Shown here: in pieces, positions 1 through 9,161 of the stretch
Numbering within the stretch: position 1 is the first letter of the stretch
How the letters are laid out: every line of letters starts with the position of its first letter
DNA from: Perkinsela sp. CCAP 1560/9
Taxonomy: Eukaryota; Protista; Euglenozoa: Kinetoplastea
Assembly (NCBI GenBank): GCA_965644495.1
Contig: CBFFSA010000095.1
Span: forward strand, 1 to 9,161
Length of the DNA stretch: 9,161 bases
Direction: 5' to 3'
Program-made: the position numbers and the translations under genes
The notes under the pieces: model-generated
The model's database searches: none
The model's input: the letters and a program-made list of their open reading frames with translations, nothing else
Told to the model about the DNA's origin: nothing

Positions 1-3000
1 GTCATCAACAAGAACGGTTTGGGTTCGGATGTTTTGGTTGCTGACTGCACCGAATTTGGTGGGCTTGGGTGCTGGAGGAAGAGAAGGCGAGAGGGAAGAT
101 GTGGGAGAAGGAGAAGGAGAGAGGGAGGAGGAGGAGGAGGAGGAGGGGGAAGGGGAAGGGGAGGGGGAGGGAGAGGAGGATGGAGAAGAGAGAGGAACAG
201 AAGAAGCAATGAGAGCATTATCTTCCCGTTGTTTCCTCAACACAGCAAACTCAGAAGACTTGGAAGGAAAAAAAGAAGCCTCAAGAATAGACCCATTTAC
301 AGCGACATTTGGTTCAGCCCCTTTAGTACCATCAGAAACAAAGGTAAAGCAACGGTCATTGACCAGGGGCCTCTCGATAGGGAAACTTCCCTTTTGGTTC
401 AATCGGAAACGTCCAACCATCTGGCCATCGATGTGCAACTCACAATCAGACCAGCCTTCATTGACCTTATTTGCAAGAGCAACAGAAAATTGAGAAAGAT
501 CTTCCATGACAAAGATCCCGTCAAGGCCTTCCTCTTTCTCAGGGTTTGGAGATTCCAACATCTTTCCACCAACAACATTAAGAGCAAACAAATTTTTCGA
601 AACACCTTCGTGAGGGAAAAGGACAGACAAGATCATCTGAACCACCGCGGTATGCTTCAAGAAGGTGACAAAATCAGTGAAAAGAAGGCCCAACAACTCG
701 CACGATAAGAAGAAGTAGTGTGAAATGGCAGAAGAGAGAGATCGAAGCTTATCGTGGGTTGGGGAAATAACATAAGTCAAAACATTTCTCCAGATGGACT
801 TGAAACATGAAGAGAGAGCGTTGGTGATGTAATTGGATACGGAGACAATGTTTTTCCAAACGAAGTTGAAGAAAGAAGAAAAAGTGTTTGAGATAGATTT
901 GTAGAGAGAGACAACATTCTTCCAGACGAAGTTGCAGCAAGTAGAAATTGTGTTGGTGGTTGATTTGGAGACAGAGACAACATTCTTCCAGATAAAGTTG
1001 CAGCAAGTAGAGATTGTAGTGGCGATAGACTTGTAGACAGCGACAATGTTTTTCCAAACGAAGTTGAAGAAAGAAGAAAAAGTGTTTGAGATAGATTTGT
1101 AGACAGAGACAACGTTCTTCCAAACAAAGTTACAGCACGAAGAGATTGTAGTGGCGATAGACTTGTAAACAGAGACGACATTCTTCCAGATGAAGTTAGA
1201 AAAAGAGGAGAGAGAGTTGGTGGTCGATTTGTAGACAGAGACAATGTTCTTCCAGATGAAGTTGAAGAAAGAGGAGGTAGTTTTGACGACAGATTTGTAG
1301 ACAGAGACAATGTTCTTCCAGATGAAGTTGAAGAAAGAAGAGATAGAGTTGGTGATAGACTTGTAGACAGAGACAGTGTTCTTCCAGACAAAGGTACAAC
1401 ATGAAGAGATTGTGCGAGTGGTGGATTTGTAAGCAGAAATGATGGTCCTACGAAGGAAGTTGTAGCAAGAAGAGATTGCATTGGAGATAGACTTGCAGAT
1501 AGAGATAACATTCTTCCAGATGAAGTTGAAGAAAGAGGAGACAGAGTTGGTGATAGACTTGTAGACAGAAATGACATTCTTCCAGATGAAGTTGAAGAAA
1601 GAAGAGATAGAGTTGGTGGTCGATTTGTAAACAGAAACTACATTCTTCCAGATAAAATTATTGCACGAAGAGATTGTGCGAGCGATGGATTTGTAAGCAG
1701 AAATAATGTTCCGACGAAGGAAGTTGTAGCAAGAAGAGATGAGAGTGGTGACTGATTTGTAAACAGAGACAACATTCTTTCGGATGAAGTTGAAGAAAGA
1801 AGAGATAGAGTTGGCGGTTGATTTGTAGACAGAGACGACATTCTTCCAGATGAAGTTGAAGAAAGAAGAGATTGTGTTGGTGATAGACTTGTAAACAGAG
1901 ATAACATTCTTTCGAATGAATTTGTAGCACGAAGTAATGGCGTTAGTGATAGACTTGTAGATAGAGACAGTGTTCTTCCAGATGAAGTTGAAGAAAGAAG
2001 AGATAGAGTTGGCGGTTGATTTGGAGACAGAAACAACGTTCTTCCAGACGAAGTTGAAGAAAGAAGAGATCGAGTTGGTGGTCGATTTGTAGACAGAGAC
2101 AACGTTCTTCCAGATAAAGTTGCAACAAGTAGAGATTGTGTTGGTGATTGATTTGTAGACAGAGACAACGTTCTTCCAGATGAAGTTGAAGAAAGAAGAA
2201 ATCGAGTTGGCGGTTGATTTGGAGACAGAAACAACATTCTTCCAGATGAAGTTGAAGAAAGAAGAGATTGAGTTGGTGGTTGATTTGTAGACAGAGACAA
2301 TGTTCTTCCAGACAAAGTTGCAACAAGTAGAGATTGTGTTGGTGATTGATTTGTAGACAGAGACAATGTTTTTCCAAACGAAGTTGAAGAAAGAAGAGAC
2401 AGAGTTGGTAACAGACTTGGAGATAGAGACAACGTTCTTCCAGACGAAGTTGAAGAAAGAGGAGATAGAGTTGGCGGTTGATTTGTAGACAGAGACAACG
2501 TTCTTCCAGATGAAGTTGAAAAAAGAGGAGATAGAGTTGGTGGTCGATTTGTAGACAGAGACAACGTTCTTCCAGATGAAGTTACAGCAAGTAGAGATTG
2601 TGTTGGTGATTGATTTGTAGACAGAGACAATGTTTTTCCAAACGAAGTTGAAGAAAGAGGAGATAGAGTTGGCGGTTGATTTGTAGACAGAAACAATGTT
2701 CTTCCAGATAAAGTTGAAGAAAGAGGAGATAGAGTTGGCGGTTGATTTGTAGACAGAGACAACATTCTTCCAGATGAAGTTGAAGAAAGAAGAGACAGAG
2801 CTGGAGATAGACTTATAAACAGAGACAACATTCTTCCAGATAAAGTTGCAACAAGTAGAGATTGTGTTGGTGATTGATTTGTAGACAGAGACAATGTTCT
2901 TCCAGATAAAGTTGCAACATGAAGAAATTGTGTTGGTAATAGATTTGTAGACAGAGACAATGTTTTTCCAAACAAAGTTGCAGCAAGTAGAGATTGTGTT

Positions 3001-4280
3001 GGTGACTGATTTGTAGATGGAAACAACATTTCTCCAAATGAAGTTGAAGAAAGAAGAGACAGAGTTGGTGATAGACTTGTAAACAGAAACAACGTTCTTC
3101 CAGATAAAGTTGGAGCAAGTAGAAAAAGTGTTGGTGAAAGACTTGTAGATAGAAACAACGTTTTTCCAGATAAAATTAAAACAAGAAGAGGACGTATTTG
3201 TGACGAACTTGGAGAAGGAAGCAACATTTCTCCAAATAAAATTGAAACACAAACTCAAACGACCCCAAACAGGGCGAAAAAGGTAAGAAGAGAGAACCTC
3301 CCAAACAGAATTGCAAACGGATCCAATTCGTCGTGAAACAGAATTGAAAAAAGAGCAACATGAAAGCCAAAAAGAATTAAAATAACTTGAAACTCCATCG
3401 AGAATGAAAGCGGCAGCAGATCTCAGAGTTTCATAACGAGCCATAAATGAATTTAACACAATCGTGTACACAAGAGTGAGAAACGCAGCAAGACGAGAAG
3501 AAAAAGAGGTGGCTTGCACAACACCAATCATAGCTTTTGGCTTTTGGATCTTCTTCTTCTTCTTCTTCTTCTTGAGGCGTTTTGGTTCGAAAATTGGAAC
3601 CTCTTCTTCTCCTCCAAAAAGACTTGTGGGAGCATCATCATCATCAAAACATTCCTCTTCTTCGAAACCAGAAGGGACACAAGGTTCTTCTTGTTTGGGA
3701 GCTTGTTTTTTCAAATGAAGAATGACCATCAATTGAGCCTCTTTAACAATCCCCTCTTCTCTAACAGTCGCATAATCATTGTCGAGCTGCCTTCCCTTGT
3801 AGATGATGCGTTGTTGAGAAACAGGAAAAGCAAACTTATCATAAAGCTTCTTTTTGATCTCGAGAATTTGATCAGAATCGCTGACATGAAGAGAGAATCC
3901 CATTCCTGTCAAAGTTTTGATAAAGATATCAAAAGAGGTGTTGAGCAAGATTGCGTGGACAATCGCCTCCTTGTAAAGACCTGCTTGTTCCACAGTAACA
4001 TCCCCTTGAAAAAAAAAAAAAGAGAACATTTTAGATTTCATTCCACCACACCCCCACAACCAATCTCCACACCCACAATCACAAGAAAAAAAGAAAATCT
4101 TTTTTTTGAACCTGTTAATTTTTTGCCACGAAAAATGAGACTCAAAGAATTTTGAGGCACCTCTGCAATCCCTTCCACACGATACGCAACTGTTTGGAGT
4201 TTATCCTCTGGACTCACAAACAAATGCACAGTCTTTCCGGTCTTAAACTTAAAAAAAATAGGCCATTTGGCGCCCTTCAT
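1..4280 (-). CDS. Spliced, 3'-partial gene (exon 1 4280-4112, exon 2 4004-<1; >1391 aa): tandem ubiquitin-like domain protein with a giant 22-mer amphipathic helical repeat and a C-terminal beta-rich domain
   Basis: ATG at 4280 in AAAATG context with an in-frame TGA just upstream. Exon 1 reads MKGAKWPIFFKFKTGKTVHLFVSPEDKLQTVAYRVEGIAEVPQNSLSLIFRGKKLT(G); removing 4111-4005 joins it to (G)DVTVEQAGLYKEAIVHAILL, completing a Ubl fold. The frame then stays open 4004 nt to base 1 (no TTA/CTA/TCA seen in plus frame 1), ending ...PTKFGAVSNQNIRTQTVLVDD. Differences among repeat copies are mostly synonymous in this frame. Missing from the ORF track because there is no stop in the window. Confidence 0.9.
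61..195 (-). repeat. Low-complexity Ser/Pro linker (purine-rich GGA/GGAAGG runs on the plus strand)
   Basis: Encodes ...SSPSSSPSPSPSPSPSSSSSSSLSPSPSPTSSLSPSLPPAPKP in the left gene's frame. Confidence 0.8.
247..600 (-). other. Uncharacterised beta-rich globular domain in the C-terminal part of the left protein
   Basis: Complex, non-repetitive sequence: LFALNVVGG...GIFVMEDLSQFSVALANKVNEGWSDCELHIDGQMVGRFRLNQKGSFPIERPLVNDRCFTFVSDGTKGAEPNVAVNGSILEASFFPSK, with alternating hydrophobic strands and Gly turns. Confidence 0.65.
781..3249 (-). repeat. Coding tandem repeat, 66-bp unit, ~38 copies, no indels; 22-aa unit WKN(V/I)VSVYKS(I/T)TN(S/T)IS(SFF/TCC)NF(I/V)
   Basis: The Trp codon (cca on the plus strand) recurs at exactly 66-nt intervals: 790, 856, 922 ... 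3166, 3232 (38 positions; replaced by Arg at 1450, 1714, 1780, 1912). Confidence 0.97.
3550..3573 (-). repeat. (AAG)8 microsatellite encoding Lys8 within PKRLKKKKKKKKIQKPK (polybasic / NLS-like)
   Basis: (ctt)8 on the plus strand, in frame with the left CDS. Confidence 0.85.
3712..3933 (-). other. Ubiquitin-like domain 2
   Basis: FDIFIKTLTGMGFSLHVSDSDQILEIKKKLYDKFAFPVSQQRIIYKGRQLDNDYATVREEGIVKEAQLMVILHL: ubiquitin hallmarks IFxKTLTG, PxxQQRxIxxGxQL and IxKE; followed by KKQ rather than RGG. Confidence 0.92.
3943..4265 (-). other. Ubiquitin-like domain 1 (split by the intron)
   Basis: WPIFFKFKTGKTVHLFVSPEDKLQTV...VPQNSLSLIFRGKKLTGDVTVEQAGLYKEAIVHAILL aligns by eye with ubiquitin [26 protein letters not shown]...[36 protein letters not shown]; no terminal GG. 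Confidence 0.88.
4005..4111 (-). other. Spliceosomal intron, 107 nt, phase 1
   Basis: Minus strand: ACAG|GTTCAA ... G/T-rich body ... CTAAA branch-like motif ... long poly-T tract ... TTCAAG|GGGAT. Removal restores the frame and the Ubl1 alignment; unspliced read-through stops at 4038. Confidence 0.88.
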
Positions 4281-4831
4281 TTTTCAAAAAAGAAAAAGGT
4301 AAACAACAAAATCGTCCCATCGAAAAGAAACAGCGAGAAAGATTCAGCATTCCTTTCTGCAGTGAAAAATGTCTCACTTTCAAGTGGAATCACTGAATTC
4401 CCCAAAATCATTTTGACAGTTTGAAGAACTTTCAAATTTTGTGAGGGGTCTTTTCACTTCGGAAAAAAAATTAAAAACACCCGAGAAAAATTATAGGCGA
4501 AAACAACACGAAATGAAAAATAAGTGAGAAAATTAAAAATGAACCAAAAAAAGTTTATCTCGCTGTCGAAAAATTCCACAAAATGTCGCAAGTAGCGCCT
4601 TTTTTATCATCAATTAGAAAGGAATTATAATACAACATCTTTTCAAAAAGACCGTCGATTTTTGGGAGTTCAAAATTGTGACCGTTACGGTTTTATCATT
4701 CCATTGCTCGTTGGGTTTTGTCGTCTGGGGGTTTGTTGGGTGTGTTGTTTTGTGGTTTGTTGTTTTGTGGTTTTTTTTTTTTGTTGCTTGTTTTGGTTGT
4801 TTTTTGAAAGGAACCTTTTCTTTTGAAGAGA
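4281..4831. promoter_or_regulatory. Shared upstream region (probable bidirectional promoter plus 5' UTRs) between head-to-head genes
   Basis: 551 nt between divergent ATGs (4280 minus, 4832 plus); AT-rich; strand skew flips from A-rich to T/G-rich around 4620-4690; seven TTTGAA/TTCAAA hexamers and an ACCGT-T-ACGGT palindrome at 4681-4691. Confidence 0.7.
4710..4810 (+). other. Candidate 5'-UTR intron of the right gene (~101 nt)
   Basis: Begins GTTGGG, almost purely G/T, ends TTTTTGAAAG 21 nt before ATG 4832; size, composition and AAG acceptor resemble the intron at 4005-4111. The donor position is a guess (several GTs available) and no clear branch motif was seen. Confidence 0.4.
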
Positions 4832-7800
4832 ATGGCGGAATCACAGCAGCAACTTTGGTTTGTTGAGATGGCTGATTTCGAGACAGATGACGACGAGGAA
4901 GATGAGGATGAAGAAGATGAAGTTTTTTTTGGAGATATTACTGAACGAGAAATGATTGCGAGTCTCAGATTTTCGAAAGATCTGTCTCATGGTATTGAAA
5001 GAGAAAAAGATGAAAAGTTAATAGAAGAGAAGATCCAAGAAAAGAAACCTCAAGAAAAATTTGAGGAGAAAACTGAAGACAAAACCGAAGAGAAAGTCGA
5101 AGTCAGCAACACCGAAAAGAAAGTTGAAGAACAAAAAGAGTACGATGAAGAAAGCTCTGATGAAGAAACTGAAGTTTTCTTTTGTCAGCAAATTCTCTCT
5201 TCCTCTCTCTCTGTCGAACAACCCCTCTCAAATAGCGAAAACATCTCTCCCAATCTCTCACTTCCTCTTTCAACCCCTGAAAAGGAGAGAAACAATTTCC
5301 AAGCAAGAGATGATTGGTCAAGACCTGCCAACACAGAATCTATTTCTTCTGTTTCTCTTCCTCTGTCAAACAAAAGTGATTCAGAAATAGAAGAGATCAG
5401 TCAAGAAAGCGAGGAGAAAGGAGAAAAAACAATTGATTTGCTTCTTAATATGTTTGGAGAGAAGAAAAAAATATCCTCTGACGTCTCAATGAGTGATATT
5501 TCTTCTCCTTCTGATGATACTGAGATCTCTGAAGTTTCTCTTTCTTCTCAAAAATCTGATGTTCCTTCTGATATCCCCTCTAATGTCAATGTTCTTTCTG
5601 ATGTTTCTCCTTCCTCTGATGTATTTGTTTCTTCTCCTTCTGATGATACTGACATGGCCGATGTCGCTTCTTCTATTTTGACGACTCTCTCTCCTTTTCC
5701 TTCTCCCTCTAATTTTCCTGAGGTCACCGCTGTCGCTGATGTCTCGAATGTTTCTAATCTCTCTTCTATTGGCATTCCCTCTGCGAAGGTCGATGATATC
5801 GTTAGTTTCTCTTCTCCTGAGGAGGTTGTTTCTATTCCCTCAGTCCCTTCCGATATTTGTGGTTCTTTATGTGAGCCCACCCTGAATGATCACAGCGATT
5901 TTGAGAACGAAGCTACTTTTGATGATGTTGGTGTGGTTCCCAGTGTCGATATCGTACAAGATTTTGTTCAAGAAGTTGGTGTTGATGTTGCACAAGACGA
6001 TGATGACGACGATGATGATGATGAGGAGATCTTTGATGTGTCTTTTTGTGTCGAGGGGATCGAGGAAGGAGAGAAGAATCAAGAGAAAGAAGAGATGATT
6101 GAGATTGCCGATGTGAGCACCCAAAAAGAGGAAGAGAAAAAGGGAAGAGACGAAGGGGAAGGGGAGAAAGAGAAAGTTGCACAAGAGATTGAGCTCAAGG
6201 AAGTAGAAGGAGACAAAGAGGAGAAAGTTGAAGAAGCGGAAGAAGTAAAAGAAGTAGTCGGGGCAGGGGGAAGAGACGTAGAAGCAGCAGAGAAATCCAA
6301 ACAAGAAAATAGAAATACAAGAGAAATGGAGAGTGAAGAGGAAGAGAGAGAGAGTGATGATGAGAGCGATGATGAGAGTGATGATGAGATTGACGATGAG
6401 ATTGAGTTTATTTGTGGGAATGAACAAAATGATAATGGGGAGAGTGAACAGGGAGAAGTTGACGCTGACAAAGAAGAGGAGAAGAAGGAAAAGATAGAAA
6501 AGGAAGAGAAAGAAACCAAAGAAAATCGTAATGAAAAAGGACAAGAAAAAGAAGAGAGAAAAGAGGAAAAGAGAAAACAAGAAGAGAAAGAGATAAAAGA
6601 AGAAGAGGTAGAAAAAGAAGAAGAGAAGGAGAAATTGAAAGTTGATGATGATCACCACCACACTCTTCTTGACAATCTCCCTGTCCAACTTGATGGCCAA
6701 ATCGATTCTCTCTCCAATCTCGAGGTTCAACTCGACGACAAAACTCGTGACACTGAGTGTGATCTTGATATTAAACTTGATGACACAACTTCTGACAATC
6801 TTGATGACCAACTTGATGGTGATGAGAGCTCCCACACTGAAATTGATTCTCTTGACGACCTCGATGTTCCACTTGGTGACAAAACTCTTGACACTGAGCG
6901 CGATCTTGATATTCAACTTGATGGCAAAACTTCTGACAATCTTGATGACCAACTTGATGGTGACGAGGGCTTTCACACTGAAATTGATTCTCTTGACGAT
7001 CTTGATGTTCAACTTGATGACAAAACTCTTGACACTGAGCGCGATCTTGATATTAAACTTGATGACACAACTTCTGACAATCTTGATGACCAACTTGATG
7101 GTGACGAGAGCTTTCACACTGAAATTGATTCTCTTGACGATCTCGATGTTCAACTTGACGACAAAACTCGTGACACTGATCTTGATATTAAACTTGATGA
7201 CACAACTTCTGACAATCTTGATGACCAACTTGACGGTGACGAGAGCTTTCACGCTGAAATCGATTCTCTTGACGATCTCGATGTTCAACTTGATGACAAA
7301 ACTCTTGACCCTGAATGTGATCTTGATATTTCTGGCAATCTTGATGACCAACTTGACGGTGACGAGAGCTTTCACACTGAAATCGATTCTCTTGACGATC
7401 TCGATGTTCAACTTGATGACAAAACTCGTGACCCTGAATGTGATCTTAATATTCAACTTGATGGCAAAACTTCTGACAATCTTGATGACAAAACTCTTGA
7501 CCCTGAATGTGATCTTGATATTTCTGGCAATCTTGATGACCAACTTGATGGTGACGAGAGCTCCCTCACTGAAATCGATTCTCTTGACGATCTTGATGTT
7601 CAACTTGATGACAAAACTCTTGACACTGAGCGCGATCTTGATATTCAACTTGATGGCAAAGCTTCTGGCAATCTTGATGACCAACTTGATGGTGACGAGA
7701 GCTTCCATACCGAAATCGGTTCTCTTGACGATCTCGATGTTCATCTTGATGACAAAACTCTTGGCACTGAGTGTGATCTTGACATTCAACTAGACGACAA

Positions 7801-9161
7801 AACTTCTGACAATTTTGATGACCAACTTGATGTTGACAAGAGCTCCCACACTGAAATTGAATCTCTTGACAAACTCGTTCTCCGACTTGATGATAAGACT
7901 CTAGACACTGAACTTGTGACGGAGACTGATGTTGGTGATGACAAAAATTTTGAGATTGGTCAGACGAGTGTTGTTGAGAATCTTGATGATGATTGCCTTG
8001 ATCTTCAACTTGATGACAAAACCATTGAAATTGGTCTTGTTGAGAACCTTGGGACTCAACTTAGCGACAAAGAGACGATTCCTCTTGAAAATTCTGTTGA
8101 TGATTGTCAAGATCTTGTAAATGAACAACTTGTCAAGAAGAACCCCGAAATTGATTTGATTGAGAAACCTGAATATCCTGACGAAGAGAGTGAGATGAGT
8201 GTTGTTGGTGCCTTTGGTGATGGGAAAGAAAACGCTGAATTTGGTTGTGTTGAAAAACTTGAGACTTCCACTGAGATTGGGGTCTCTGCCGAAGATGCTT
8301 TTCTTCGCCAACTTGATCATCGACTTGACGAAAAGGCAGATTTTGGGGTTGTCGAAGATTTTTTTCTTCGTCAACTTGACGATCAACTTGATGAAAAGGC
8401 AGCTTTTGGTTCGATTGAGACTCCTCAACTCGCCGTTCAACTTGATAAACAACTTAACGAGGTGGTAGAACTCAGCCCGATTGAAAACCTCAATCGACTC
8501 AAAGAGAAACTTGACGAGAAGACAGAGATTGACCTTGTTGAAAATCTTGCTCAGCTCGACAGTCAACTTGACGAACAGAGTGATGGACGTGATGATTTGA
8601 TGGAGATTAGTCTTGTTGCTAAGCTTGACGATCAACTCGATGAACTCAAGGAGCTTGATGAAAAAGAAGAGAAAGAGAAAAGAATGAAAGAGACAAGTGA
8701 GAACGCCGAACTCACATCCTCCCCTGTCCTATCACCTTCTCTTCTTCTTCTCTCTCCCTGTCTCTCTTCCCATCTCTCTCCTCGTCACTCCCCTTCTCGT
8801 CCTTCTTCTCCCCATCCTTCTTCCCCCCATCCTTCTTCTCCTTCTCATTTTTCCTCCCTCTCTCTTTTTTCTCCAGCTCCTTACTCTTTCTCTTCACCTC
8901 TCTCTTCCCTCGCCGCTCCTCTTTCACCTCCTCTCTCCTCTCCTCACTCAGCTTCTTTCTTATCTCTTTCATCTCTCTCTGATACATCATTTGTGGGGCC
9001 TGATTCTGAAGATGAACTCTGCTTTGACCTCCTTTTGCAAGGAGAGAAAGAGAAAAAGGCAGTAGAAAAAGAAAGTGAAGCAAAAGAAACAGAAACAGAA
9101 ACACAAGAAGAAGAAGGAGAAGAAATGGGAGAAGAAATAGAAGAAACAGAAGAAATGGAAG
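4832..9161 (+). CDS. 3'-partial giant acidic, low-complexity/repeat protein (>1443 aa), function unknown
   Basis: First ATG after an in-frame TGA (4805): MAESQQQLWFVEMADFETDDDEEDEDEEDEVFFGDITEREMIASLRFSK...; frame 2 is open to the last base (...EEIEETEEME). Segments: E/K-rich, Ser-rich, D9 tract, E/K charged tract, 47-aa repeats, degenerate LD repeats, Ser/Pro-rich, E-rich. Alternative start at 4868. Missing from the ORF track because there is no stop in the window. Confidence 0.92.
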   Translation, partial: MAESQQQLWFVEMADFETDDDEEDEDEEDEVFFGDITEREMIASLRFSKDLSHGIEREKDEKLIEEKIQEKKPQEKFEEKTEDKTEEKVEVSNTEKKVEEQKEYDEESSDEETEVFFCQQILSSSLSVEQPLSNSENISPNLSLPLSTPEKERNNFQARDDWSRPANTESISSVSLPLSNKSDSEIEEISQESEEKGEKTIDLLLNMFGEKKKISSDVSMSDISSPSDDTEISEVSLSSQKSDVPSDIPSNVNVLSDVSPSSDVFVSSPSDDTDMADVASSILTTLSPFPSPSNFPEVTAVADVSNVSNLSSIGIPSAKVDDIVSFSSPEEVVSIPSVPSDICGSLCEPTLNDHSDFENEATFDDVGVVPSVDIVQDFVQEVGVDVAQDDDDDDDDDEEIFDVSFCVEGIEEGEKNQEKEEMIEIADVSTQKEEEKKGRDEGEGEKEKVAQEIELKEVEGDKEEKVEEAEEVKEVVGAGGRDVEAAEKSKQENRNTREMESEEEERESDDESDDESDDEIDDEIEFICGNEQNDNGESEQGEVDADKEEEKKEKIEKEEKETKENRNEKGQEKEERKEEKRKQEEKEIKEEEVEKEEEKEKLKVDDDHHHTLLDNLPVQLDGQIDSLSNLEVQLDDKTRDTECDLDIKLDDTTSDNLDDQLDGDESSHTEIDSLDDLDVPLGDKTLDTERDLDIQLDGKTSDNLDDQLDGDEGFHTEIDSLDDLDVQLDDKTLDTERDLDIKLDDTTSDNLDDQLDGDESFHTEIDSLDDLDVQLDDKTRDTDLDIKLDDTTSDNLDDQLDGDESFHAEIDSLDDLDVQLDDKTLDPECDLDISGNLDDQLDGDESFHTEIDSLDDLDVQLDDKTRDPECDLNIQLDGKTSDNLDDKTLDPECDLDISGNLDDQLDGDESSLTEIDSLDDLDVQLDDKTLDTERDLDIQLDGKASGNLDDQLDGDESFHTEIGSLDDLDVHLDDKTLGTECDLDIQLDDKTSDNFDDQLDVDKSSHTEIESLDKLVLRLDDKTLDTELVTETDVGDDKNFEIGQTSVVENLDDDCLDLQLDDKTIEIGLVENLGTQLSDKETIPLENSVDDCQDLVNEQLVKKNPEIDLIEKPEYPDEESEMSVVGAFGDGKENAEFGCVEKLETSTEIGVSAEDAFLRQLDHRLDEKADFGVVEDFFLRQLDDQLDEKAAFGSIETPQLAVQLDKQLNEVVELSPIENLNRLKEKLDEKTEIDLVENLAQLDSQLDEQSDGRDDLMEISLVAKLDDQLDELKELDEKEEKEKRMKETSENAELTSSPVLSPSLLLLSPCLSSHLSPRHSPSRPSSPHPSSPHPSSPSHFSSLSLFSPAPYSFSSPLSSLAAPLSPPLSSPHSASFLSLSSLSDTSFVGPDSEDELCFDLLLQGEKEKKAVEKESEAKETETETQEEEGEEMGEEIEETEEME
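5499..5652 (+). repeat. Exact 25-bp direct repeat pair TTTCTTCTCCTTCTGATGATACTGA (SSPSDDT), 129 nt apart
   Basis: Copies at 5499-5523 and 5628-5652, in frame in the Ser-rich region. Confidence 0.8.
6350..6406 (+). repeat. 12-bp coding minisatellite (ESDD)x3 then EIDD EIE
   Basis: GAGAGTGATGAT GAGAGCGATGAT GAGAGTGATGAT GAGATTGACGAT GAGATTGAG. Confidence 0.8.
6686..7912 (+). repeat. Coding tandem repeat, 141-bp/47-aa unit, ~8.5 copies: IDSLDDLDVQLDDKTLDTERDLDIKLDDTTSDNLDDQLDGDESFHTE
   Basis: Anchor AAT(T/C)GATTCTCT (slightly degenerate in the last two copies) at 6700, 6841, 6982, 7123, 7258, 7381, 7573, 7714, 7855; spacings 141, 141, 141, 135, 123, 192, 141, 141, all multiples of 3. Confidence 0.95.
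8291..8416 (+). repeat. 63-bp/21-aa tandem duplication EDAFLRQLDHRLDEKADFGVV / EDFFLRQLDDQLDEKAAFGSI
   Basis: Copies start at 8291 and 8354; further degenerate QLDxQLDE-like units follow to ~8650. Confidence 0.8.
8801..8842 (+). repeat. 15-bp repeat (PSSPH)x~3 within a pyrimidine-rich Ser/Pro segment
   Basis: CCTTCTTCTCCCCAT CCTTCTTCCCCCCAT CCTTCTTCTCCT. Confidence 0.8.

Follow-up and report, generated by a model that had tools for sequence, protein, structure and literature searches.

What can a protein do with 833 consecutive residues among which there is no proline, glycine, aspartate or glutamate, and to which organism does such a protein belong? The question is raised by a 66-bp tandem array in contig CBFFSA010000095.1 of the Perkinsela sp. 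CCAP 1560/9 assembly GCA_965644495.1; the window analysed here is the entire 9161-base contig, taken from a 21 Mb assembly of 110 contigs. An earlier note, made from the DNA letters alone, had taken the array as its subject and read it, in a frame outside the list of open reading frames (ORFs), as 22-residue repeats forming a giant amphipathic helix that coats lipid or acts as a ruler. The array is real but proved to be one part of a larger spliced gene with further domains, the predicted protein consisting, in order, of two ubiquitin-like domains, an acidic linker, a Lys8 tract, a hydrophobic segment, the array, a second hydrophobic segment, a conserved domain and a Ser/Pro tail. Our leading, though still tentative, proposal is that this product could be a giant amphipathic helix which binds a membrane or lipid surface and bears a ubiquitin-like head for docking.

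Tandem Repeats Finder (TRF) places the array at 789-3190 and counts 36.4 copies in it, at 78% matches and 0% indels. On the minus strand it encodes 37 canonical 22-residue units (793-3234) without indels and with the consensus WKNVVSVYKSITNSISSFFNFI, delimited by an F-[IVL]-[WR]-[KR] motif that occurs 37 times at a spacing of exactly 22 residues; three degenerate 22-residue units which keep the array register adjoin them at 3235-3432. The stretch without Pro, Gly, Asp or Glu runs from 763 to 3261 on the same strand exactly as had been described, with zero of each in 833 residues and a net charge of +84. Serine (169) is the most abundant residue, followed by V 105, N 104, I 92, F 85, K 72, T 71, Y 35, W 34 and C 29. 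In the consensus unit, hydrophobic residues occupy positions 1, 4, 5, 7, 8, 11, 15, 18, 19, 21 and 22 and lysines positions 2 and 9; every position listed as hydrophobic in the earlier note is present, with 7 and 21 to be added and Phe21 lying on the polar side.

The frame in which the array had been read is the coding frame and not a by-product of the repeat. A six-frame scan finds it without a stop on the minus strand over positions 1-4200, that is for 1400 codons, until it exits at the contig start; it was missing from the ORF list because it runs off the contig end and the lister skips such ORFs. Across the array it is the sole stop-free frame of the six, and codon differences between units amount to 2976 synonymous versus 4723 non-synonymous when read in this frame, compared with 1342 versus 5792 or worse in the others; synonymous changes thus make up 39% of the differing codons. 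Third codon positions are the most variable, and Nei-Gojobori comparison between units gives synonymous and non-synonymous proportions of difference (pS and pN) of 0.49 and 0.15, respectively, a pN/pS of 0.30. Even invariant residues are specified by synonymous codons: Asn3 by AAC in 22 units and AAT in 14, Lys9 by AAA in 24 and AAG in 12, Phe21 by TTC in 24 and TTT in 12, and Ser10 by four codons. Units which have diverged synonymously to this degree are therefore old and have not been homogenised recently, and still indels have not been tolerated, a combination that fits a structure whose phase must persist from unit to unit. The open frame also extends past the array on both sides into non-repetitive sequence with recognisable domains. 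A second minus-strand frame, Ser/Thr/Leu-rich, is open for 286 codons (780-1637) and 538 codons (1641-3254) and has one stop within the array. ORF listers report this frame, which is a by-product of the repeat since its synonymous share is far lower.

The units are not all alike. Between 930 and 2990 (minus strand), units carrying Phe-Phe at positions 18-19 alternate with interspersed units carrying Cys-Cys (or Cys-Tyr), and in part of the array the units are ordered in threes as CC, FF, FF, which suggests a higher-order repeat of 66 residues. The Cys-Cys pairs sit on the hydrophobic face and, speculatively, could be acylation sites.

Fourier analysis of the array gave the harmonic 22/6, equal to 3.67 residues or 98.2 degrees, as the largest on the Kyte-Doolittle, Fauchere-Pliska and Eisenberg scales, exceeding the 180-degree component (a secondary one, at 0.19) by 2.6-4.5 times on all three. 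This corresponds to the 11 residues per three turns that had been foreseen. The periodicity is coherent over the whole array as the moment summed over all 814 residues stays at 0.50, with a mean hydrophobicity of 0.58, and the hydrophobic stripe therefore does not drift; the consensus unit has a moment of 0.56, a value attained by 0.04% of 5000 shuffles. On a helical wheel, W1, V4, V5, V7, Y8, I11, I15, F18, F19 and I22 fall on an arc of ∼165-200 degrees, with K2, K9, N3, N13, N20 and the serines on the opposite side together with F21, in agreement with the suggested polar face of Ser/Thr/Asn with two lysines per unit. In hendecad notation, positions a, d, e and h are occupied by W1, V4, V5 and Y8 and then by T12, I15, S16 and F19, and positions 7, 11, 18 and 22 are hydrophobic as well. 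Overall, 45% of the array is hydrophobic, 18.5% is Phe, Trp or Tyr, and the charged 10% is entirely basic. A transmembrane reading of the units was rejected, as their mean 19-residue hydropathy is 0.31, versus 1.55-1.78 reached in both flanks, and lysine lies mid-unit. AlphaFold, run without an alignment on residues 148-555 (408 residues), built three helices, 101, 128 and 119 residues long, without any strand, a model compatible with a helical reading but no proof of it. The length of ∼125 nm calculated earlier for such a helix is arithmetically correct.

The gene which contains the array starts at an ATG at 4280-4278 and is transcribed from the minus strand. Exon 1 (4112-4280) codes for MKGAKW, followed by the N-terminal two thirds of ubiquitin-like domain 1. 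It is followed by a spliceosomal intron of 107 nt (4005-4111), GT..AG with a long pyrimidine tract ahead of the AG and identified from transcript-like contigs, and by exon 2 (1-4004), which is open to contig base 1 without a stop codon such that the C-terminus is cut off. Among public runs, a contig of run X3 joins 4003 to 4111 and a contig of run X4 ends at 4006, and transcript-like contigs cover 3191-4003, the 5′ part of exon 2; two runs thus support both the intron and this part. Run X3, which supplied the joined contig, has zero coverage in the intergenic region at 4319-4694. The exons were searched separately and the joined N-terminus was taken from the library protein P0006, a transcriptome-derived sequence of 305 residues filed under Paramoeba atlantica (MMETSP0151, EukProt), which begins MKGAKWPIFF and carries the spliced reading KKLTGDVTVEQ. 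P0006 diverges from the window at ∼3401 (minus strand), where GAGGAG replaces GATGGAG, a 1-base deletion, and the resulting frameshift terminates it before the array. No indel was present at this site in the four public runs compared there, and the deletion is taken as a presumed error or rare variant of the 2013 assembly. Within its own genome the gene has no paralogue, as searches with the array and with the C-terminal part return only the gene itself. We conclude that the gene is real, single-copy, spliced, transcribed and eukaryotic. Separately, contigs of run X2 join distant places of the window on opposite strands (3859/6000 and 4388/5032); these joins are absent from the other runs and are probably chimeric short-read contigs.

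The intron also indicates whose gene this is. Perkinsela, the kinetoplastid endosymbiont of Paramoeba, is reported to be without any cis-splicing (PMC11613528). An origin of the gene in the endosymbiont was rejected on this ground, as the gene has a cis-spliced intron; it is therefore a gene of the amoeba host or of another eukaryote in that culture.

At the N-terminus of the protein, ubiquitin-like domain 1 (residues 7-76 of the spliced protein; 3946-4262, minus strand) is split by the intron, and exon 1 alone matches Pfam ubiquitin as a truncated domain (E 1.8e-05, 24.8 bits, profile positions 1-48). Ubiquitin-like domain 2 (3712-3927, minus strand) is a full match to PF00240 above the gathering score (E 1.9e-15, 56.8 bits). 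In residues 1-200 of P0006, Pfam detects both as two ubiquitin stretches with 94.5 bits together, and the pair is collinear with solved structures of linear di-ubiquitin, residues 7-155 corresponding to 7-155. The C-terminal Gly-Gly is absent from both, domain 1 continuing as ...AILLNTSF and domain 2 as ...ILHLKKQAP. These are therefore built-in ubiquitin-like domains and not cleavable modifiers. Straight after the acidic linker comes the polybasic tract KRLKKKKKKKKIQKPK (Lys8; 3535-3582, minus strand), within which TRF detects a 3-base run at 3549-3573. The 21-residue hydrophobic segment 1, RLAAFLTLVYTIVLNSFMA (3436-3498, minus strand), has a Kyte-Doolittle 19-residue mean of 1.55 and is a borderline membrane-anchor candidate. 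On the other side of the array, hydrophobic segment 2 (∼35 residues; 613-717, minus strand) reaches 19-residue means of 1.78 and 1.68 and is modelled as a helix with a predicted local distance difference test score (pLDDT) of 67-82; a hairpin or membrane anchor is possible.

Beyond this segment lies a conserved C-terminal domain (253-615, minus strand), predicted to be beta-rich and containing the motifs DGxxVGRFRL and PIxRP. Its ∼120 residues align with the environmental protein P0137/P0151 at 34% identity and with more than 60 invariant columns. The domain matches no Pfam family at E values up to 10 and no NCBIfam model; in a feature search of the ESM Atlas the only matches were unnamed clusters (0.91-0.93) and DUF7918 (0.85), treated here as no evidence, and the structure predicted from a three-sequence alignment (pLDDT 44) is too poor for use. 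Positions 1-210 (minus strand) encode a Ser/Pro low-complexity tract and, from the alignment with P0151, the beginning of a short terminal segment that the contig leaves incomplete. P0151 also has a Ser-rich tract, followed by a terminal hydrophobic strand, and places the true stop a few residues past the window end. Upstream of the common domain, P0151 is Ser-rich and Arg-bearing, with a hydrophobic residue every three to four positions, and lacks the window unit; the physical character of the pre-domain region thus seems to be kept where the sequence differs, and the parts of P0151 stand in the same order as those of the window protein. The environmental contig of P0151 begins with an Illumina adapter (L008:1-50), its first residues MLFRS... 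being translated adapter, and its N-terminus is truncated. It is the one homologue found, partial and from an environmental assembly: word-indexed searches with the whole protein (region 1084-1347) and with P0151 gave no full-length relatives of the C-terminal part, and a scan of metagenome contigs with the C-terminal alignment gave 377 pattern matches, none of them confirmed.

How might these parts work together? In water, the array would be unfolded or chaperoned. On a hydrophobic interface it would fold into a single continuous 11/3 amphipathic helix of ∼120-125 nm, lying flat in the interfacial layer of a membrane leaflet or lipid monolayer, with Trp, Val, Ile, Phe, Tyr and Cys directed toward the lipid and the acid-free Ser/Thr/Asn/Lys face directed toward anionic head groups and water. 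The ends of the helix would be held by the Lys8 tract and by the hydrophobic segments on either side, and the ubiquitin-like pair, in the cytosol, would be a handle on which ubiquitin-binding machinery docks. A strict register of 22 residues would keep the hydrophobic stripe on one side over the full length, and the zero-indel rule fits such a helix, since insertions of any length other than a multiple of 11 would turn the stripe. We infer the lipid binding, the surface orientation, the role of the ubiquitin-like head and the anchoring by the flanks. Phage tape-measure proteins provide a precedent for metastable helices entering membranes (PMC10038345). If the lipid binding is true, the protein offers a test of how length, aromatics and charge set selectivity between membranes and droplets, and it would represent a surface coat linked to ubiquitin-binding machinery.

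Several observations weigh against a lipid-bound helix. The hydrophobic face takes up ∼6 of 11 positions, very wide for a helix lying on a surface. Chou-Fasman propensities favour beta over alpha, at 1.16 versus 0.93, and the composition is intrinsically beta-prone; a helix would therefore need an interface, as is the case for perilipin-4 and alpha-synuclein (PMC5889406). The AlphaFold model of the array, the sole fold model obtained for it and a helical one, has a low mean pLDDT of 44.7. The best-conserved positions are polar, Asn3, Ser6, Lys9, Ser10, Ser16 and Asn20; a plain lipid binder needs residue class and not identity, and these positions therefore hint at specific contacts between helices or with a partner. 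With hydrophobic residues at 45% and aromatic ones at 18.5%, a helix of this length would, if free, be aggregation-prone and membrane-unselective by analogy with the mutants of PMC5889406, which would also argue against reversible, droplet-selective binding. Both flanking segments are borderline for membrane insertion, and the RNA contigs were compared with positions 3191-6000 only.

The same array invites comparison with phage proteins. When 1.84 billion representatives were searched exhaustively with HMMER, 2828 matches fell below 1e-3, the best at ∼1e-33, with 17-31% identity over 300-700 residues. They are tail tape-measure proteins of phages. Two of them, P0001 and P0013, contain PF10145 and have tape-measure PHROG matches of 1e-116 to 1e-138; among 44 other matches that were sampled, PF10145 was found in 17, TMP_3 in 8, the TMP repeat in 2 and TMP_2 in 1, a tape-measure Pfam domain being present in at least 26 of the 44. 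Searched directly against PHROGs, the array matches phrog_5493 at 2.8e-65 and five further tape-measure PHROGs below 1e-30, among them phrog_167 at 3e-41 and phrog_4070 at 1.9e-35, the similar families including phrog_5493, 167, 4070, 4200 and 1272. Tail tape-measure proteins contain tryptophan-marked 11-residue repeats (Belcaid et al. 2011; PMC3271669), and it is these that form the matched parts, with a consensus of W-N-x-I-K-S among the matches. The proteins are extended helices in which each residue accounts for about 1.5 Å of tail, and the hydrophobic parts of these proteins enter membranes (PMC3271669, PMC10038345). The matched arrays show the 98-degree peak, a mean hydrophobicity of 0.48-0.75, 20-39% Ser/Thr/Asn and 10-23% aromatic residues, and two are nearly acid-free. 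P0003 has a 22-residue unit, WTNISNGIKSAWNAVAHFFGST, in which 7 of 22 residues (W1, N3, K9, S10, N13, F18 and F19) are common with the window unit in register.

These scores were examined with controls. Complete shuffles of the array score 0 and random permutations of columns over all units mostly score below 50 bits, against a median of 108 bits for the top 20 of the native array, an advantage biased upward because the control database consisted of matches pre-selected by the native query. Permutations preserving the hydrophobic and polar columns, however, score 41-120 bits and the reversed array 155 bits against one protein. The scores therefore come mainly from the pattern multiplied by 37 repeats; profile similarity is no proof of homology, and common descent with tape-measure repeats is neither shown nor excluded. 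In a related observation, tape-measure repeats themselves (P0001, P0004, P0013 and 27 of 44 matches in alignment A2) weakly match Pfam models of unrelated amphipathic helices, namely Baculo_PEP_C, ApoLp-III, Apolipoprotein and the diatom pyrenoid component DPC2, indicating that periodic arrays cross-match readily. The protein contains no PF10145, PF20155, PF06791 or PF05017 (Pfam at E up to 0.1 gives ubiquitin families only, NCBIfam none), and no tail genes neighbour it on the contig, which holds the spliced eukaryotic gene and a divergent acidic-repeat gene. As tape-measure domains are absent and the gene context is eukaryotic, the array is filed as one that may work like a tape-measure array and not as a member of that family. 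Of the analogues offered in the earlier note, phage tape-measure proteins are the closest at the sequence level; the statement there that the repeat was not recognised as a described family has to be qualified in view of its resemblance to the tryptophan-marked repeat, although the scores are largely driven by pattern.

The strongest competitor of the lipid-bound helix, in our judgement distinctly less likely, is a self-associating hendecad rod or ruler in which several chains would associate, as tape-measure proteins do within the tail tube, into a coiled coil that is straight or has a slight right-handed twist. This would make a ∼120 nm fibre or spacer, one end bearing the ubiquitin-like heads and the other the conserved domain, and the conserved Asn, Ser and Lys would make inter-helix contacts. 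The wide hydrophobic face and the strong purifying selection on polar positions are more readily accommodated in this manner, the closest sequences are tape-measure arrays of identical periodicity, and the zero-indel rule fits a length-defining device. Such a rod would lack acidic residues for salt bridges, and +84 per chain would cause repulsion in a homo-oligomer; Ser, Thr and Asn have low helix propensity without an interface, and the terminal hydrophobic segments and Lys8 tract resemble membrane anchors.

An improbable alternative is that the 22-residue unit represents one coil of a beta-solenoid or cross-beta stack, giving a stiff fibre with Asn ladders at positions 3, 13 and 20 and with Val, Ile, Phe and Cys stacked inside. 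Residue ladders are a feature of parallel beta-helices, which the three nearly invariant Asn and the interspersed Cys-Cys columns recall, and the beta-prone composition and the secondary 180-degree component, reflecting odd positions that are mostly hydrophobic and even positions that are mostly polar, point in the same direction. Against this, the 98-degree component dominates the 180-degree one on every scale, turns would have to be made without Gly or Pro, the 408 residues modelled by AlphaFold include no strand, and tape-measure arrays of like pattern are helical (PMC10038345, PMC3271669).

Marginally less probable again is gene transfer, in which a phage or prophage tape-measure repeat passed to a bacterivorous amoeba, was fused to host domains and expanded, a history compatible with any mechanism. 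The PHROG matches, the number of library matches and the frequency of tape-measure Pfam domains among those sampled, together with the unit of P0003, are what would be expected from it. These observations are offset by the controls, in which pattern-preserving permutations and the reversed array still score high, by identities of just 17-31%, by the failure to find a tape-measure N-terminal domain, Pfam TMP repeat or NCBIfam match in the protein, and by the intron and eukaryotic domains of the gene. It is equally doubtful that the array is an amoeba-captured tape-measure repeat of 37 units which now acts as a 125 nm ruler or membrane-inserting rod with a linear-di-ubiquitin-like head; if that were so, it would mark the first domestication of a tape-measure module by a eukaryote.

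That the locus is an artefact, a mis-assembled or non-coding satellite with an accidental open frame, is already largely refuted and very improbable, since a short contig that ends inside both its genes, short-read contigs that break at the array edge, the second open frame of 286 and 538 codons and the frameshift of P0006 before the array are outweighed by an open frame that runs 790 bases below and ∼1000 bases above the array into recognisable domains, by a pN/pS of 0.30 and the best synonymous share of six frames, by four runs without the indel of P0006 and by the same order of parts in P0151.

The second gene of the contig lies ∼550 bases away in divergent orientation (4832-9160, plus strand) and is itself cut off, by the opposite end of the contig. 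Its product is a very acidic protein exceeding 1440 residues. The gene contains ∼8.4 copies of a 141-bp (47-residue) Asp/Leu-rich unit at 6699-7911 as well as Glu/Lys-rich and Ser/Pro-rich tracts; it has no Pfam match, and a transcript-like contig begins at 4753. Its charge is opposite to that of the +84 array, for which it could be a partner or solubiliser.

With a lipid-bound helix as the preferred reading, the protein can be placed among known systems. Membrane-anchored proteins such as HERPUD1/Usa1 and TMUB1/2 have one or more cytosolic ubiquitin-like domains joined to membrane-associated hydrophobic segments and are not conjugated. The window protein resembles them in having ubiquitin-like domains and hydrophobic segments and in lacking a C-terminal Gly-Gly, sequence relation being compared at the ubiquitin fold only; to our knowledge, none of them has a tandem di-ubiquitin-like head or a repeat array. 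With tape-measure arrays it has in common the 11/3 periodicity, Trp/Phe markers, a Ser/Thr/Asn/Lys polar face, long gap-free tandem arrays, a hydrophobic segment just upstream and, for some of them, near absence of acidic residues. It differs in that the unit is 22 and not 11 residues with Trp every 22, Gly, Pro, Asp and Glu are wholly absent, and the gene is eukaryotic and spliced with a ubiquitin-like head and an unrelated C-terminal domain.

Among lipid-binding repeats, the exchangeable apolipoproteins (A-I, A-IV, E and apolipophorin-III) and alpha-synuclein are similar in that amphipathic repeats phased at 11/22 fold on lipid, but theirs are class A helices with acidic centres and basic edges, punctuated by proline, whereas the window array has neither acid nor Pro. 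The protein has no apolipoprotein or synuclein Pfam match. Amphipathic lipid packing sensor (ALPS) motifs have a Ser/Thr-rich polar face and bulky aromatic and aliphatic residues opposite, and the array, with 41% Ser+Thr+Asn and 18.5% Phe+Trp+Tyr, is comparable in these respects. ALPS motifs are nevertheless 20-40 residues long, Gly-rich and almost uncharged, in contrast to an array ∼20 times longer (833 residues), without Gly and with 10% Lys+Arg, two lysines in every 22 residues.

Perilipin-4, with 29 × 33 residues in 968 amino acids (Copic et al. 2018; PMC5889406), is comparable in having hundreds of residues of Thr/Ser/Val-rich, 11-residue-phased repeats without indels, a predicted 3-11 helix and a similar length. 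Its repeats are 35% hydrophobic, 0.2% Phe+Trp+Tyr and 15% charged with both signs, have a moment of 0.257 and are Gly-rich (PMC5889406), unlike the window array with a moment of ∼0.5, 18.5% aromatic residues, exclusively basic charge at 10% and no Gly. No perilipin family, PAT domain or four-helix bundle is detected by Pfam in the window protein. Giant amphipathic repeats phased at 11 residues are as such already known from perilipin-4, apolipoproteins and tape-measure proteins; the variant that is not described in the libraries and literature searched is one of acid-free, Gly/Pro-free, aromatic-rich 22-residue units under purifying selection, in a eukaryotic protein where a linear-di-ubiquitin-like head precedes them and a conserved domain without family assignment follows. 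The signature common to the phage and eukaryotic arrays may reflect either an unusual transfer of genes or convergence on one solution for a long helix that is metastable and membrane-competent. Very long helices of this phase are rare, and perilipin-4 is the textbook case, working because it is weakly hydrophobic; the window protein represents the opposite extreme, of similar length but with twice the moment, about one fifth of its residues aromatic, no acid and a charge of +84.

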